This document shows positions 4,003 to 15,471 of a stretch of 64,000 nucleotides of DNA, piece by piece. The position numbers were made by a program, and so were the translations under genes. Source of the DNA: Mizuhopecten yessoensis. Taxonomy: Eukaryota. The stretch is from assembly GCF_002113885.1 (NCBI RefSeq), contig NW_018408917.1:1137390-1201389 (forward strand), read 5' to 3'. The notes beneath the pieces are model-generated. The model was not told the origin of the DNA. It was given only the letters and a program-made list of their open reading frames with translations, and made no database searches. The stretch's first letter is position 1. Each line of letters opens with the position of its first letter.

Positions 4003-4043
4003 ATGTCGGATGGCACTGATGGTTCTGGGCCTACTGGAGGGAG
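4003..4043 (+). CDS. Pseudo-caspase coding exon 1 (MSDGTDGSGPTGG)
   Basis: ATG in AAGATGT context, donor GAG|GTATGT, phase 2 matches the next exon; upstream acceptor ttaatag| at ~3972 implies a 5' UTR exon further upstream. Confidence 0.65.
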
Positions 4044-13000: not shown

Positions 13001-15471
13001 AGATTATATAGAAGGGGGTCTTAAATGTTACATGTACAGTCGTTTATTGACTCGTTAAAGGGGCATAACGGTGAAGTAACTTTATTTTTTGTCTTTTTTT
13101 CAAATACTACATAAACATATCAAGTGAGACTCCTTATGGAAAATAACGATCGGATTTGGCTGAAATAGATTCATAAAAATGATTAAATCTAAGAAAATAA
13201 TCGGTATTTCTGCTGTCTGACCAACGTTTTGTTCAGGGATTTCCCTCTACTAGCGCATGCGCATAGCACACCATTTCTTTGTAAACAAAATGACTGGCCG
13301 TGTGAAGTAAGCGAAAGAAAAGTGTTGTACCGTGTCAGCTACGAAACGAAAAGTTGCCAAATGGTCAAAAGATAGCGCAAGGAGTACGTTACGGAATCAT
13401 TATTGCAGGTGGGCAGTATTCAAAGGAGAAAATAACTGCCGTAGCAGTTAGTACGGTGCATGTATTCTTCCGGATAGCCGGTTAAGCTGAAATGGAATCG
13501 ACAGAAATGCTAGCGCTGTTTATGTCATGAATAAATATCTAAAACTATTAAGCTCGCTAGTATCTTTGTCTGAGTTTGAACACAGATGAACTTAGTTTAA
13601 TATGTTAATGGGCATGTATTGGAGAGAGTTTACTTTGTGTTTCTATAATTATACAGTGATTTATGCGAAAGGAAGGGATAAGTGACTGGGTAGTTTGATT
13701 TTTCCATGAGGCCCTCCAAGGGATAACTGTTGTGATGGCCCACGGCGTATTTTCTGGGGCACCGAGATACGTGTTATCGAAGTCCGTGGATTTACATAAT
13801 TTATAATATTACCGGGTTCAATAAAATGGTATGTTTTAATTATATTGCTGAATTAAACGATTATTTTTGTTTTTACATGCAAGATTTAAATTAGTATTAA
13901 TATGAATACCCGGCCTCCACTGCCCCGGCAACATATAAAAAACAATCAGAAAGGTTTGTCCCTTGGTGTAGGGAAGGTGTTTAGCCACGTACCATCTGTA
14001 CCGGCCACATTCCGGTACTTAATTCAATATATATTTAAATATATCTACTTTATGTTTATGCCTATTATCATTGTTGACATTTAATTGTAAATGTATGACG
14101 GGAGAAGGCTGTGATAAATTGTAAAAACTTGTGTCCAATCCCTTGTTTAATTTTATTGGCAACGCATTTATGTTTAAAGCTAAATAAATTTAAATTCTGA
14201 ATATTGGCAAGTGTGCAATTTACTACTAATGATGAATAATTATTGTTAAATAAGTTTGAATACAGACTTAGAAATCATATAACTTGGTTTCATAGTGCGG
14301 CAAGAAGTTGCATTGCCTGACGGCCCCTTTCTGGGGGCCTCTTTTGAAACCGTTTCATCTCGCTCGCACCACCTGTGTTTACTGCCTAGTCAGGTGACGT
14401 TATTGGCGCTATTTTTAGCAGGGCTTTCCCGAACAATTCAAGTGGTCAAACTGGACATTTGGAACGGACTATGAATATGGGGATAGCATGGTAACATAAG
14501 TGGAAGTGCATACAATACATACATTCATTAAAAAAAAAACGCCTTTTCACGTGATGTCCCTTTAAAACTTATGTGGGTTAGGAGGTTATATATAAATTCT
14601 GGTAAATGGCAAACGATTTTAAAATTACATTGTGATAAATAATTCTGGCAAATTGTAGAACTGATTATATTTCAAAATGTCAAAATCAAACTCAAGATCT
14701 ATTTTGGGTTGATTTATTGAGGGCATGGAGAAAAATTAATGAAAAATATAAGTCACCTTGCAGTAAGTTCAAAATGCCCATCTTGTACAAGAATAAGGTT
14801 AGAATAGAAAAAGAAGTTTATTTTACAGAGTATGGTGCAATAAAGGAATAATCATAATTAATGATCTAATCAAAGACAGAAATACCTTTTACACATTTCA
14901 AGAATTCAAACAGATTAATGATATTAATACAAACTTTATAAGATACTACGGTCTAATTACTGCCACTAGAGAGCATATTATACAACAAGATATGTCAAAC
15001 TTTTCGTAGACATTGCTTGAGATTTCCTCAAGTCTAAGATTTCCCATAGACAATACATTGCTTGAGATTTCCTCAAGTCTAAGATTTCCCATAGACAATA
15101 CATTGCTTGAGAATTCCTCAAGTCTAAGATTTCCTATAGACAATACATGCTGGAGTTTTTTTTCGCAACTTTGAGATGTTTTATACAAGCTATCCAGGTT
15201 AAAGTAATCCTCAGTCAGCTATAAATTTCAGAAGATAATACCAGGTACTTGTTTTTGTTAAACAGGATTCTGGAGTCGGGGAGAAGCTTCTCCATACATC
15301 GCAGCTGTCATTGAGGCATTTGAGACCCATGTTTTGAAAGAAAACATGGACATTCTGAAGCTGTTGACCAGAATCAACGGAATAATGGCCAAAGAGGATT
15401 CCCTAATTCCATTAGTGACATCACTGTTAACAAAACGCTTTCACTTCCGACCGAAAGTACCGGTTTCTTGA
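4003..15471 (+). CDS. Caspase-3/7-like protein lacking the catalytic dyad (pseudo-caspase), 278 aa; join(4003..4043,5567..5829,8655..8848,12244..12376,15266..15471)
   Basis: Five exons, all GT-AG, phases 2/1/0/1 consistent, 837 nt open to TGA. Caspase motifs: GRALIVNN, RKGSEID, NLT..EL, CFLCVIMS(F)G, FTGDKCKSLATKPKIYFI, KIPRECNF, DILKLLTRIN, IPLVTSLLTKRFHF. Confidence 0.88.
5567..5829 (+). CDS. Pseudo-caspase exon 2 (start of p20: YPENFQFVGRALIVNNHIF..RKGSEIDVQKIEALLSKLGF..NLTKDEL)
   Basis: tttctattacag| acceptor, AAG|GTAAAT donor, open frame with caspase p20 motifs; absent from the ORF track. Confidence 0.88.
5925..7602 (+). mobile_element. Complete Helentron-type HINE with a central 321-bp tandem array (~4.5 units), in caspase intron 2
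   Basis: Subterminal inverted repeats GGTCACCTGAG (5931) / CTCAGGTGACC (7569), (CGT/CGTC)n microsatellite, 3' hairpin AGGCCCTTGGGCCT then CTTGT; units start at 6061, 6382, 6703 and 7024. Confidence 0.85.
8122..8258. repeat. Fold-back (palindromic) MITE-like element
   Basis: ATAATTATTCAATCTAAT..CTTCACATTGCTCCCGTTTACTGATATGTC versus GACATATCAGTAAA..AAACGGGAGCGATGTGAAG..ATTAGATTGATAATTAT. Confidence 0.75.
8481..8547. repeat. (TG)n microsatellite and poly-G flanking a 17-N assembly gap
   Basis: Direct reading. Confidence 0.95.
8655..8848 (+). CDS. Pseudo-caspase exon 3 (p20 core: CFLCVIMSFGEPGII..FTGDKCKSLATKPKIYFIM)
   Basis: ctttcag| acceptor, ATG|GTAAAG donor; aligns by eye to caspase-3 FVCVLLSHGEEGII..FRGDRCRSLTGKPKLFIIQ. 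Confidence 0.92.
8948..9256 (+). mobile_element. Short HINE-like element
   Basis: Subterminal inverted pair ATCCCCCACTTT / AAAGTGGGGGAT, T-run start, ends CTTGTT. Confidence 0.55.
10235..12151. repeat. 38-bp minisatellite, ~50 copies, in caspase intron 3
   Basis: Unit ATTGTATCGTGATACGTATCATATCGTGAGGTATGCGT; period 38 (e.g. 10501 to 10539). Confidence 0.97.
12244..12376 (+). CDS. Pseudo-caspase exon 4 (linker and start of p10: GNDNY..KKIPRECNFVTQYSS)
   Basis: ttgcag| acceptor, AAG|GTGAGA donor; KIPRECNFVTQYSS resembles caspase KIPVEADFLYAYST. Confidence 0.85.
12740..15000 (+). mobile_element. Degenerate L1/Tx1-type LINE ORF2 fragment (post-RT region), split by a Kolobok-type insertion
   Basis: W.KRLLTPI..GRIHIIKSLSISQFNHLFISLPNP..F.W.SKVDK..DYIEGGLK; rejoining across the TTAA gives FIDSLKLMWVRRL. 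Confidence 0.8.
13059..14561. mobile_element. Non-autonomous Kolobok-type DNA transposon (TTAA TSD)
   Basis: TTAA|AGGGGCATAACG ... CGTGATGTCCCT|TTAA; further copies at 30036-30527 and 43272-45182. Confidence 0.85.
15011..15147. repeat. 45-bp tandem repeat x3
   Basis: CATTGCTTGAGATTTCCTCAAGTCTAAGATTTCCCATAGACAATA at 15011, 15056 and 15101. Confidence 0.92.
15266..15471 (+). CDS. Pseudo-caspase exon 5 (p10: SPYIAAVIEAF..DILKLLTRIN..IPLVTSLLTKRFHF..*)
   Basis: ttttgttaaacag| acceptor, phase 1, caspase p10 C-terminal motifs, TGA at 15469-15471. Confidence 0.88.

Follow-up and report, generated by a model that had tools for sequence, protein, structure and literature searches.

Within a 64,000-nucleotide stretch of the Mizuhopecten yessoensis genome (contig NW_018408917.1, positions 1,137,390 to 1,201,389 of the forward strand; hereafter the window) lies a five-exon gene of the caspase family whose product lacks both members of the catalytic dyad. 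We conclude with high confidence that it is a conserved pseudo-caspase of the executioner type, doubly dead through the replacement of the histidine by Phe120 and of the cysteine by Asn168. The best overall explanation, in which this conserved, dead caspase-7-like gene serves as a dimerising regulator, is given slightly better than an even chance.

Gene model, transcript and catalytic residues

The five exons lie on the forward strand and are bounded throughout by GT donors and AG acceptors (Table 1). The coding sequence of 837 nucleotides specifies 278 residues and ends in TGA, and the protein is letter-for-letter identical to XP_021380375.1, "caspase-7-like [Mizuhopecten yessoensis]". The locus also has an older model, OWF37390.1 ("Caspase-7", 296 residues), which carries eight further residues from an upstream exon and ten more upstream of the ATG; this upstream exon is dispensable for the 278-residue protein. 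When the exons were scanned separately against Pfam only PF00656 (Peptidase_C14) was matched, by exon 2 (5.6e-8, profile positions 2-56), exon 3 (7.5e-7, positions 61-124) and exon 5 (2.6e-3, positions 177-232), and the same family is assigned to XP_021380375.1 in precomputed annotation. The scan gave no CARD and no DED, and the tandem DED arrangement that precedes the caspase-like domain of cFLIP is absent. The caspase domain begins near residue 30-38, leaving an N-terminus of about 35 residues as in the short-prodomain executioner caspases, and the protein shows neither an additional domain nor a signal peptide or partner motif. An earlier, sequence-only reading of this DNA had proposed five canonically spliced exons encoding an intact p20 plus p10 protein with neither DED nor CARD; that proposal is reproduced here, and the Peptidase_C14 profile agrees with its family assignment.

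The tripeptide SFG occupies residues 119-121, with the codon for Phe120 at 8708-8710. The sequence MGNDN occupies residues 166-170; Met166 is the final codon of exon 3 (8846-8848) and Asn168 is encoded at 12247-12249. A phmmer search of the PDB aligns Phe120 with the catalytic histidine of caspase-7, and FIMGNDN with FIQA(C>A)RG, which places Met166 at the glutamine and Asn168 at the cysteine position. The change of SHG to SFG, and of QACRG to M/GNDN across the exon 3/4 junction, had been read from the sequence alone and is confirmed by this alignment. The intron after Met166 falls at the same place, apparently in the same phase 0, as that following the glutamine of QACRG in several scallop paralogues such as C179, C5512 and C5493. 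Since the intron position matches, the alignment of MGNDN with QACRG has independent support and is not an artefact of splice choice.

Other motifs noted in the earlier reading were also recovered: FRKG starts at residue 59 (within FRKGSEID, which supplies Arg60, the first S1 arginine), DVSEG spans residues 175-179 in the linker, MAKEDS starts at 251 (within MAKEDSLIP, the short L4) and IPLVTS, the start of the interface strand, at 258. L4 is reduced to approximately seven residues. Arg60 is kept and is invariant in scallops, and the glutamine of the S1 pocket is replaced by Met166. The S1 arginine of the p10 region is ambiguous in alignment, the orthologues reading R/R/L/E/K. A catalytic histidine is missing from all six scallop sequences, which have phenylalanine. 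With no nucleophile, no general base, methionine for the S1 glutamine and an unconserved p10 arginine, catalysis is excluded within the limits of sequence evidence. The linker has an acidic residue followed by glycine in six of six scallop sequences (DVSE-GG in M. yessoensis), and an xxxD-G site lies near the N-terminus in five of the six (DGTD6-G in M. yessoensis).

Could the genuine catalytic residues reside in an exon that the model has missed? All forward frames between 3000 and 17000 are free of the motif [AGST]-C-[RQGS]-[GA], and the sole S/T-H-G there sits in a non-caspase open reading frame (ORF) in intron 4. No alternative catalytic exon is therefore available, and the exons with histidine or ACRG that would have spoken against the sequence-only reading were not found in this range. 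A short assembly gap in intron 2 was considered as a possible coding gap and rejected, being intronic with a continuous exon 2/3 junction. It is flanked by a GT run on one side and G runs on the other, and no coding sequence crosses it. The spliced RNA contig described below has 332 nucleotides ahead of exon 3, which equal exon 2 (263), the coding part of exon 1 (41) and a leader of 28, and the orthologous proteins, including a transcript-derived one, align without gaps over the exon 2/3 junction. On these two independent observations no exon is hidden in the gap.

RNA reads were mapped over 8545-14544. The joint 8848>12244 (GT..AG) is present in five raw reads, one from run X22 and four, with four different starts, from run X24. 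Run X4 gives a spliced contig of 2858 nucleotides at a depth of 246, in which exon 3 takes up positions 333-527 and exon 4 follows at 528-662. Over the mapped range the RNA data contain no joint out of exon 3 that competes with 8848>12244, and intron depth is near zero apart from dispersed repeats. The gene is transcribed and correctly spliced; the exon 3/4 junction is placed by reads, the exon 1/2, 2/3 and 4/5 junctions by contig-length arithmetic and the orthologues. The junction evidence sought for the sequence-only model is thus in hand at exon 3/4. A single coding difference was seen, G to T at 12312 in exon 4 of the X4 contig, which in the reading frame of the model changes CTG to CTT and is synonymous (leucine).

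The introns are rich in repeats. Much of intron 3 is occupied by a minisatellite with a unit of 38 bp (10238-12151, approximately 50 copies, 90% matches), which accounts for the strong GC skew at 10-12 kb; RNA read joints inside it resemble repeat-length differences or mis-placement. Intron 2 holds a tandem repeat of 321 bp (6059-7460, 4.4 copies, 94% matches) with the same short ORFs in each copy. Both strands carry very deep RNA coverage at 12545-12744 and 12945-14544, and loose ends number in the hundreds at 12559/12560 and 12590. Such a pattern marks dispersed repeats or pieces of transposons that are transcribed at other places, and intron 4 of this gene is not its source. Two more stretches of N occur in the window outside the gene, at 61531-61950 (420 letters) and 31396 (a single letter).

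Table 1. Features of the gene, and the scallop loci at which the catalytic histidine is missing. Positions refer to the window unless a contig label precedes them.
Feature	Position	Strand	Remarks
Optional upstream coding exon MDGKLTNM	2683-2706	+	Only in older model OWF37390.1, spliced to 3973
Exon 1, coding part	4003-4043	+	ATG, residues 1-13 plus 2 nt; GT donor at 4044
Exon 2	5567-5829	+	Residues 14-102 (part); p20-like start; first S1 Arg60 in FRKGSEID
Assembly gap (Ns)	8522-8539		Intron 2; 2.7 kb past the exon 2 donor, 115 nt before the exon 3 acceptor
Exon 3	8655-8848	+	Residues 102-166; best-kept large block; SFG inside, Met166 last codon
Exon 4	12244-12376	+	Residues 167-211 (part); GNDN at the ACRG position, linker DVSE178-GG, then KIPRE
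Exon 5	15266-15471	+	Residues 211-278, TGA; p10-like; degenerate L3, short L4
Beta-6 dimer-interface strand, I258-F271 (IPLVTSLLTKRFHF)	15406-15447	+	Segment of highest conservation in the protein
C5590 (this gene)			His motif SFG; Cys motif MGNDN
C5493	G000:C5493:9800-13760	+	His motif SYG; Q/GCTP, Cys kept
C4870	G000:C4870:103280-103453	+	His motif GFG; following exon not identified
C2569	G000:C2569:114700-116860	-	ALG; exon ends ...KPKIFIVM like this gene

Orthologues, selection and origin of the clade

Orthologues were sought by phmmer with exon 2 against 1.84 billion representatives (five matches, two of them useful), followed by a word search with a full-length match. Five other scallop sequences were obtained: Azumapecten (Chlamys) farreri (P0001 = ADN05225.1 / G0T523, 277 residues, 70% identical, named 'caspase'), Ylistrum balloti (P0007, 282 residues, 'caspase-7-like'), Argopecten irradians (P0008, 273 residues, 'caspase-7-like'), Pecten maximus (P0002, a truncated model of 222 residues, 'caspase-8-like') and a transcript-derived sequence with no annotated name (P0009, 286 residues). 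SFG and I[M/V]GNxx are present in all five. When the proteins were mapped exactly to their genomes, Y. balloti and A. irradians proved to have these five exons in the same arrangement, making three complete genomic models with that of M. yessoensis, and the first four exons of P. maximus map to this plan. The orthologue annotated as a truncated 222-residue 'caspase-8-like' protein in P. maximus is at L017:25001-25186; the truncation comes from a model that continues past the exon 4 donor. Exon 5 was not found within 8 kb downstream, where the locus contains a gap of 500 Ns, and P. maximus therefore entered the dN/dS comparison with four exons only. A Sas10/Utp3 gene is the upstream, opposite-strand neighbour in P. 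maximus and Y. balloti, and a Sas10/Utp3 exon lies on the minus strand about 13.5 kb upstream of the M. yessoensis gene.

Rough dN/dS values by the Nei-Gojobori method (NG86) are 0.13-0.31 in the nine pairs with correctable dS; dS is saturated in the tenth pair. Bootstrap upper limits of the uncorrected pN/pS do not exceed 0.67 in any of the ten pairs. On these comparisons neutrality is excluded, and the sequences are under purifying selection. Thus an intact ORF with the same dead motifs is found in six species, with exon structure and synteny kept and dN/dS below 1, as expected of a pseudo-caspase retained by selection. The sequence-only reading had foreseen that annotation pipelines would mislabel such a gene, and the names in use are indeed caspase-7-like, Caspase-7 and caspase-8-like.

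A six-frame Pfam scan of the scallop genome gave about 50 caspase exon matches, with the gene itself in single copy on its contig. Used as protein queries against that genome, exons 2, 4 and 5 matched only themselves and exon 3 alone reached paralogues. The nearest of these is 49% identical in exon 3 and is itself without the histidine. The scallop genome thus holds no close active paralogue, and the gene is not a recent duplicate of an active caspase of the type represented by mosquito CASPS18. Histidine is missing at four of the 22 scallop loci whose His..Cys exon was read (Table 1); at one of them, C2569, no cysteine motif was present in the next exon.

Searching with the alignment as a profile brought in many oyster proteins under the names caspase-7-like or caspase-3-like (Magallana/Crassostrea, Saccostrea, Ostrea), together with Mytilus proteins. 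Every full-length oyster or Mytilus member lacks the histidine (S[Y/F/C]G) and the cysteine (QLE, QLD or QTIPE). Scallop, oyster and Mytilus members have in common KIPRE, a P-x-VTSLLT strand and the clade-specific, invariant Cys128 and Gln145; Cys128 is present in 16 of 16 aligned members, at a position where canonical caspases have a hydrophobic residue. A search of a protein atlas returned generic caspase clusters only. We also observed a protein of 672 residues (P0004, dipteran by its relatives) with two tandem caspase domains, the first canonical with THG and QACRG, the second with the histidine replaced (TYN) and QACSN, which may be a fused active and decoy pair.

A maximum likelihood tree was calculated with IQ-TREE (LG+C20, posterior mean site frequency model) from 42 rows and 256 columns. 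Scallop paralogues were represented at 20 loci by partial sequences concatenated from tblastn high-scoring segment pairs, C4870 being excluded as too short, and the outgroups were arthropod, fish and placozoan caspases, with no canonical oyster or mussel caspases. The six scallop orthologues group together with support of 100/99 and the dead mussel and oyster proteins with 98/91, and the two form one clade of 18 rows (99/94) that excludes 18 other paralogous scallop loci and all the outgroup sequences. The sister of this dead clade, with weaker support (87/75), is C5493. Simple long-branch attraction is disfavoured because C2569, a dead paralogue with an equally long branch, stays outside. By parsimony the loss of both dyad residues would be older than the split of Pectinida, Ostreida and Mytilida, which dates to the early Palaeozoic.

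Fold, conservation and possible function

An AlphaFold2 model calculated with the 16-sequence alignment has a mean predicted local distance difference test score (pLDDT) of 67.8 and a predicted template modelling score of 0.72; the low-confidence parts are the N-terminus (1-31), the linker (173-196) and residues 257-266. In Foldseek the first places go to human caspase-7 and procaspase-7 (E 4.5e-18; target-based template modelling score as high as 0.86) and the next to caspase-3, -6 and -8; the top 50 matches are all caspases. Human caspase-7 is also the best PDB match by sequence (phmmer, 8.6e-25). In the prediction the protein retains the alpha/beta fold of caspases (MEROPS C14A), divided into p20-like and p10-like halves, and resembles human caspase-7.

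Conservation was assessed by region as mean pairwise identity among the five full-length scallop proteins, for which the overall value is 0.55. The beta-6 dimer-interface strand (258-271) reaches 0.92, followed by the His..Cys block (105-170) at 0.72 and the segment from KIPRE to beta-5 at 0.69. The L3 equivalent (0.47), the linker (0.44) and the L4 equivalent (0.30) are the most variable. The interface strand, IPLVTSLLTKRFHF, is close to IPCITSMLTKEIYF of the canonical scallop caspase-3/7 at G000:C179:893600-897100. This pattern fits a protein that has kept the caspase core and its dimerisation surface and given up substrate binding, and the earlier idea of a decoy or dimerisation regulator is compatible with it.

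What might such a protein do? The pseudo-caspase subunit, predicted to be unable to cleave substrates, would dimerise through the conserved beta-6 interface either with itself or with an active executioner caspase. The dimer would tune caspase activation at the executioner level, in the manner of cFLIP-L, CSP-3 and the mosquito decoy caspase in other settings. Active caspases might still process the protein at the acidic residue and the Gly/Ser that follows it in the linker (DVSE-GG here; DQSD-G or xxxD-G in relatives), and the recurrence of this site suggests that they may do so. A dimerising regulator is favoured because conservation peaks at the interface strand and is lowest at the substrate loops. 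As a specific mechanism, regulation of executioner caspases by a dimerising protein without catalytic function, perhaps with a processing site in its linker, is a reasonable proposal that falls somewhat short of an even chance. A fuller picture is of an ancient, dedicated regulatory subunit, a doubly dead caspase-3/7 paralogue originating before scallops, oysters and mussels diverged and retained ever since, which would heterodimerise with or be processed by active executioners and fix the threshold at which apoptosis or immune cell death begins in pteriomorphs; this we put forward tentatively and consider doubtful.

Several points weigh against these interpretations. Executioner procaspases are stable homodimers, so formation of a heterodimer is not a given. 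The beta-6 strand is kept in all caspases and its conservation here may reflect folding alone; in the AlphaFold2 model, which is of modest mean confidence, pLDDT drops below 50 at 257-266, i.e. in the interface strand. The values of dN/dS are rough because dS is saturated (0.95 to over 2). The tree contains partial, concatenated paralogues and fast-evolving rows, and some long-branch attraction in it is possible. Expression is low, at a depth of about 1-2 when a fifth of the reads was taken from each of three ordinary RNA-seq runs, and a literature search found no interaction, activity or phenotype study of the protein or of clade members.

The principal alternative is that the protein is a conserved non-catalytic binding or scaffold module outside caspase regulation, for example a pattern-recognition or signalling adaptor. 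The block at 105-170, with its invariant Cys128 and Gln145, hints at a maintained surface unrelated to proteolysis. One report describes oyster caspase-family proteins that bind pathogen-associated molecular patterns (PAMPs) and bacteria (PMC12122919), and 'unusual functions' have been proposed for mutated bivalve caspases (PMC10967218). However, those PAMP-binding caspases retain other domains or the dyad, the scallop protein offers PF00656 and no extra domain, signal peptide or partner motif, and its most conserved element, the interface strand, points to caspase-type assembly. We consider such a module unlikely, if worth keeping in mind, and a role outside apoptosis is conceivable. It is improbable that the protein is a cleavable decoy substrate or competitive sink, with caspases or inhibitor of apoptosis proteins (IAPs) binding or cutting at DVSE178-G or DGTD6-G and so being titrated from their real targets. 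The acidic residue and Gly/Ser at the same linker position in scallops and oysters, and the N-terminal xxxD-G in five of six scallop sequences, would suit this role, but P1 is glutamate in most scallop sequences, a poor caspase P1 residue, and the linker is among the least conserved regions. The IAP-sink variant suggested by the sequence-only reading is less likely because the groove that IAPs use on executioner caspases is degenerate, with methionine for glutamine, a short L4 and a variable L3 that is missing in oysters.

Two further alternatives concern the catalytic centre itself. That the protein is still a hydrolase through other residues is very improbable. The candidate would be Cys128, which replaces a hydrophobic residue of canonical caspases in every aligned clade member and lies in a highly kept block, but the histidine is replaced by Phe or Tyr and by no general base, the oxyanion and S1 elements are changed, L3 is absent in oysters, and we know of no precedent for a hydrolase of this kind. 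That the gene is a decaying duplicate, or is mis-modelled with catalytic exons present in the real transcript, is hardly credible. Loss of both catalytic residues, repeat-filled introns and an assembly gap within the gene might give that impression. Against decay, the frames are open in six species (the P. maximus model being without its last exon), the substitutions recur in each of them and dN/dS stays far below 1; against a faulty model, the spliced transcript agrees with it, there is no alternative histidine or cysteine exon, and the gap is intronic. A pseudogene or hidden catalytic exon was accordingly rejected, to the extent that the RNA contig, orthologue structure, dN/dS and motif scan, all evidence from sequence, permit.

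The ancient regulatory subunit, if correct, would represent a cFLIP-like control layer acting at the executioner rather than the initiator step in pteriomorph bivalves. The dead clade also supplies a concrete candidate for a mode of executioner caspase regulation that needs no death-fold domain. Bivalve caspase and IAP families are greatly expanded, and apoptosis is central to bivalve immunity and stress tolerance. Gene surveys count each Peptidase_C14 match as a caspase; at least one scallop 'caspase-7-like' gene is, by its sequence, not a protease and yet is preserved by selection. Expression studies that take it as a marker of caspase-3/7 activity would misread it.

Prior reports and known systems

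The sequence-only reading suggested that this control layer might be undescribed. This is overstated, because published bivalve caspase surveys already report mutated catalytic dyads (PMC7836458, PMC10967218), and the C. farreri orthologue has been deposited (ADN05225.1). Crassostrea gigas has caspase-3/7-like genes with 'highly diverse p20 active sites', and bivalve executioner-type homologues without histidine or cysteine may have lost catalysis (Vogeler et al. 2021, PMC7836458). QACxG sites missing alanine, cysteine or glycine are reported in C. farreri (Wei et al. 2022, PMC8878197), and a Mytilus coruscus survey calls mutation of the dyad 'ubiquitous in bivalve caspases' (PMC10967218). ADN05225.1, for which the literature search traced no publication, is very probably CF.47297.24-caspase3/6/7 of PMC8878197, given agreement in length, exon number, mass, isoelectric point and grand average of hydropathy; this probable counterpart is silent only from zygote to the 2-8-cell stage and is expressed afterwards (Wei et al. 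2022). Our searches found no functional study of the dead bivalve clade and no paper defining the scallop orthologue group, its selection regime or its shared origin with the oyster and mussel proteins. With 'pseudo-caspase' or 'pseudocaspase' and mollusc terms, no paper using those words was among the matches listed. With three bivalve orders represented in it, the dead clade makes a defined orthologue group, open to testing, out of what had been scattered comment in the literature that some bivalve caspases have altered dyads.

The closest counterparts are oyster Cg3/7-like A-H (Vogeler et al. 2021, PMC7836458), along with the dead proteins of caspase-3/7-like type in Mytilus. Like the scallop protein they are short, prodomain-less p20 plus p10 proteins without the catalytic histidine and cysteine, and they belong to the same clade, sharing KIPRE, the P-x-VTSLLT strand and Cys128, at 28-35% identity. 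The oyster proteins in the databases were matched to these published genes by description and are probably the same. Oyster members have S[Y/F]G and QLE/QLD, are without the L3 loop and the first S1 arginine, and are tandemly expanded. The scallop gene, in contrast, is single copy on its contig and retains Arg60 and a segment of L3 length. Among solved structures human caspase-7 is the closest (e.g. 1GQF, 5V6U); its p20/p10 topology matches and its prodomain is likewise short. It differs in possessing His144, Cys186, an S1 pocket with Gln and Arg, and L3 and L4 loops of full length, where the scallop protein has Phe120, Asn168, Met166 and an L4 of about seven residues.

Among pseudo-caspases with an established regulatory role, vertebrate cFLIP-L (CFLAR) has a caspase-like domain without the catalytic cysteine and heterodimerises with an active caspase (PMC7586951). 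It is the model for the mechanism proposed here, with the difference that cFLIP-L has two DEDs, is a paralogue of the initiator caspase-8 and works at the death-inducing signalling complex, whereas the scallop protein has no recruitment domain and is of executioner type. Caenorhabditis elegans CSP-3 and CSP-2 are protease-inactive caspase homologues that restrain an executioner caspase by binding its subunits. CSP-3 comprises a small subunit only; the scallop protein carries both subunit regions on one chain. Aedes aegypti CASPS18 is reportedly a short-prodomain, effector-type protein. Decoy caspases are established in Diptera (Bryant et al. 2010, cited in PMC3141678), and CASPS18 is one of these, an inactive homologue that arose by gene duplication and modulates another caspase. 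It stems from a recent duplication of an active neighbour, which it enhances, whereas the scallop gene belongs to an old clade and has no close active paralogue.

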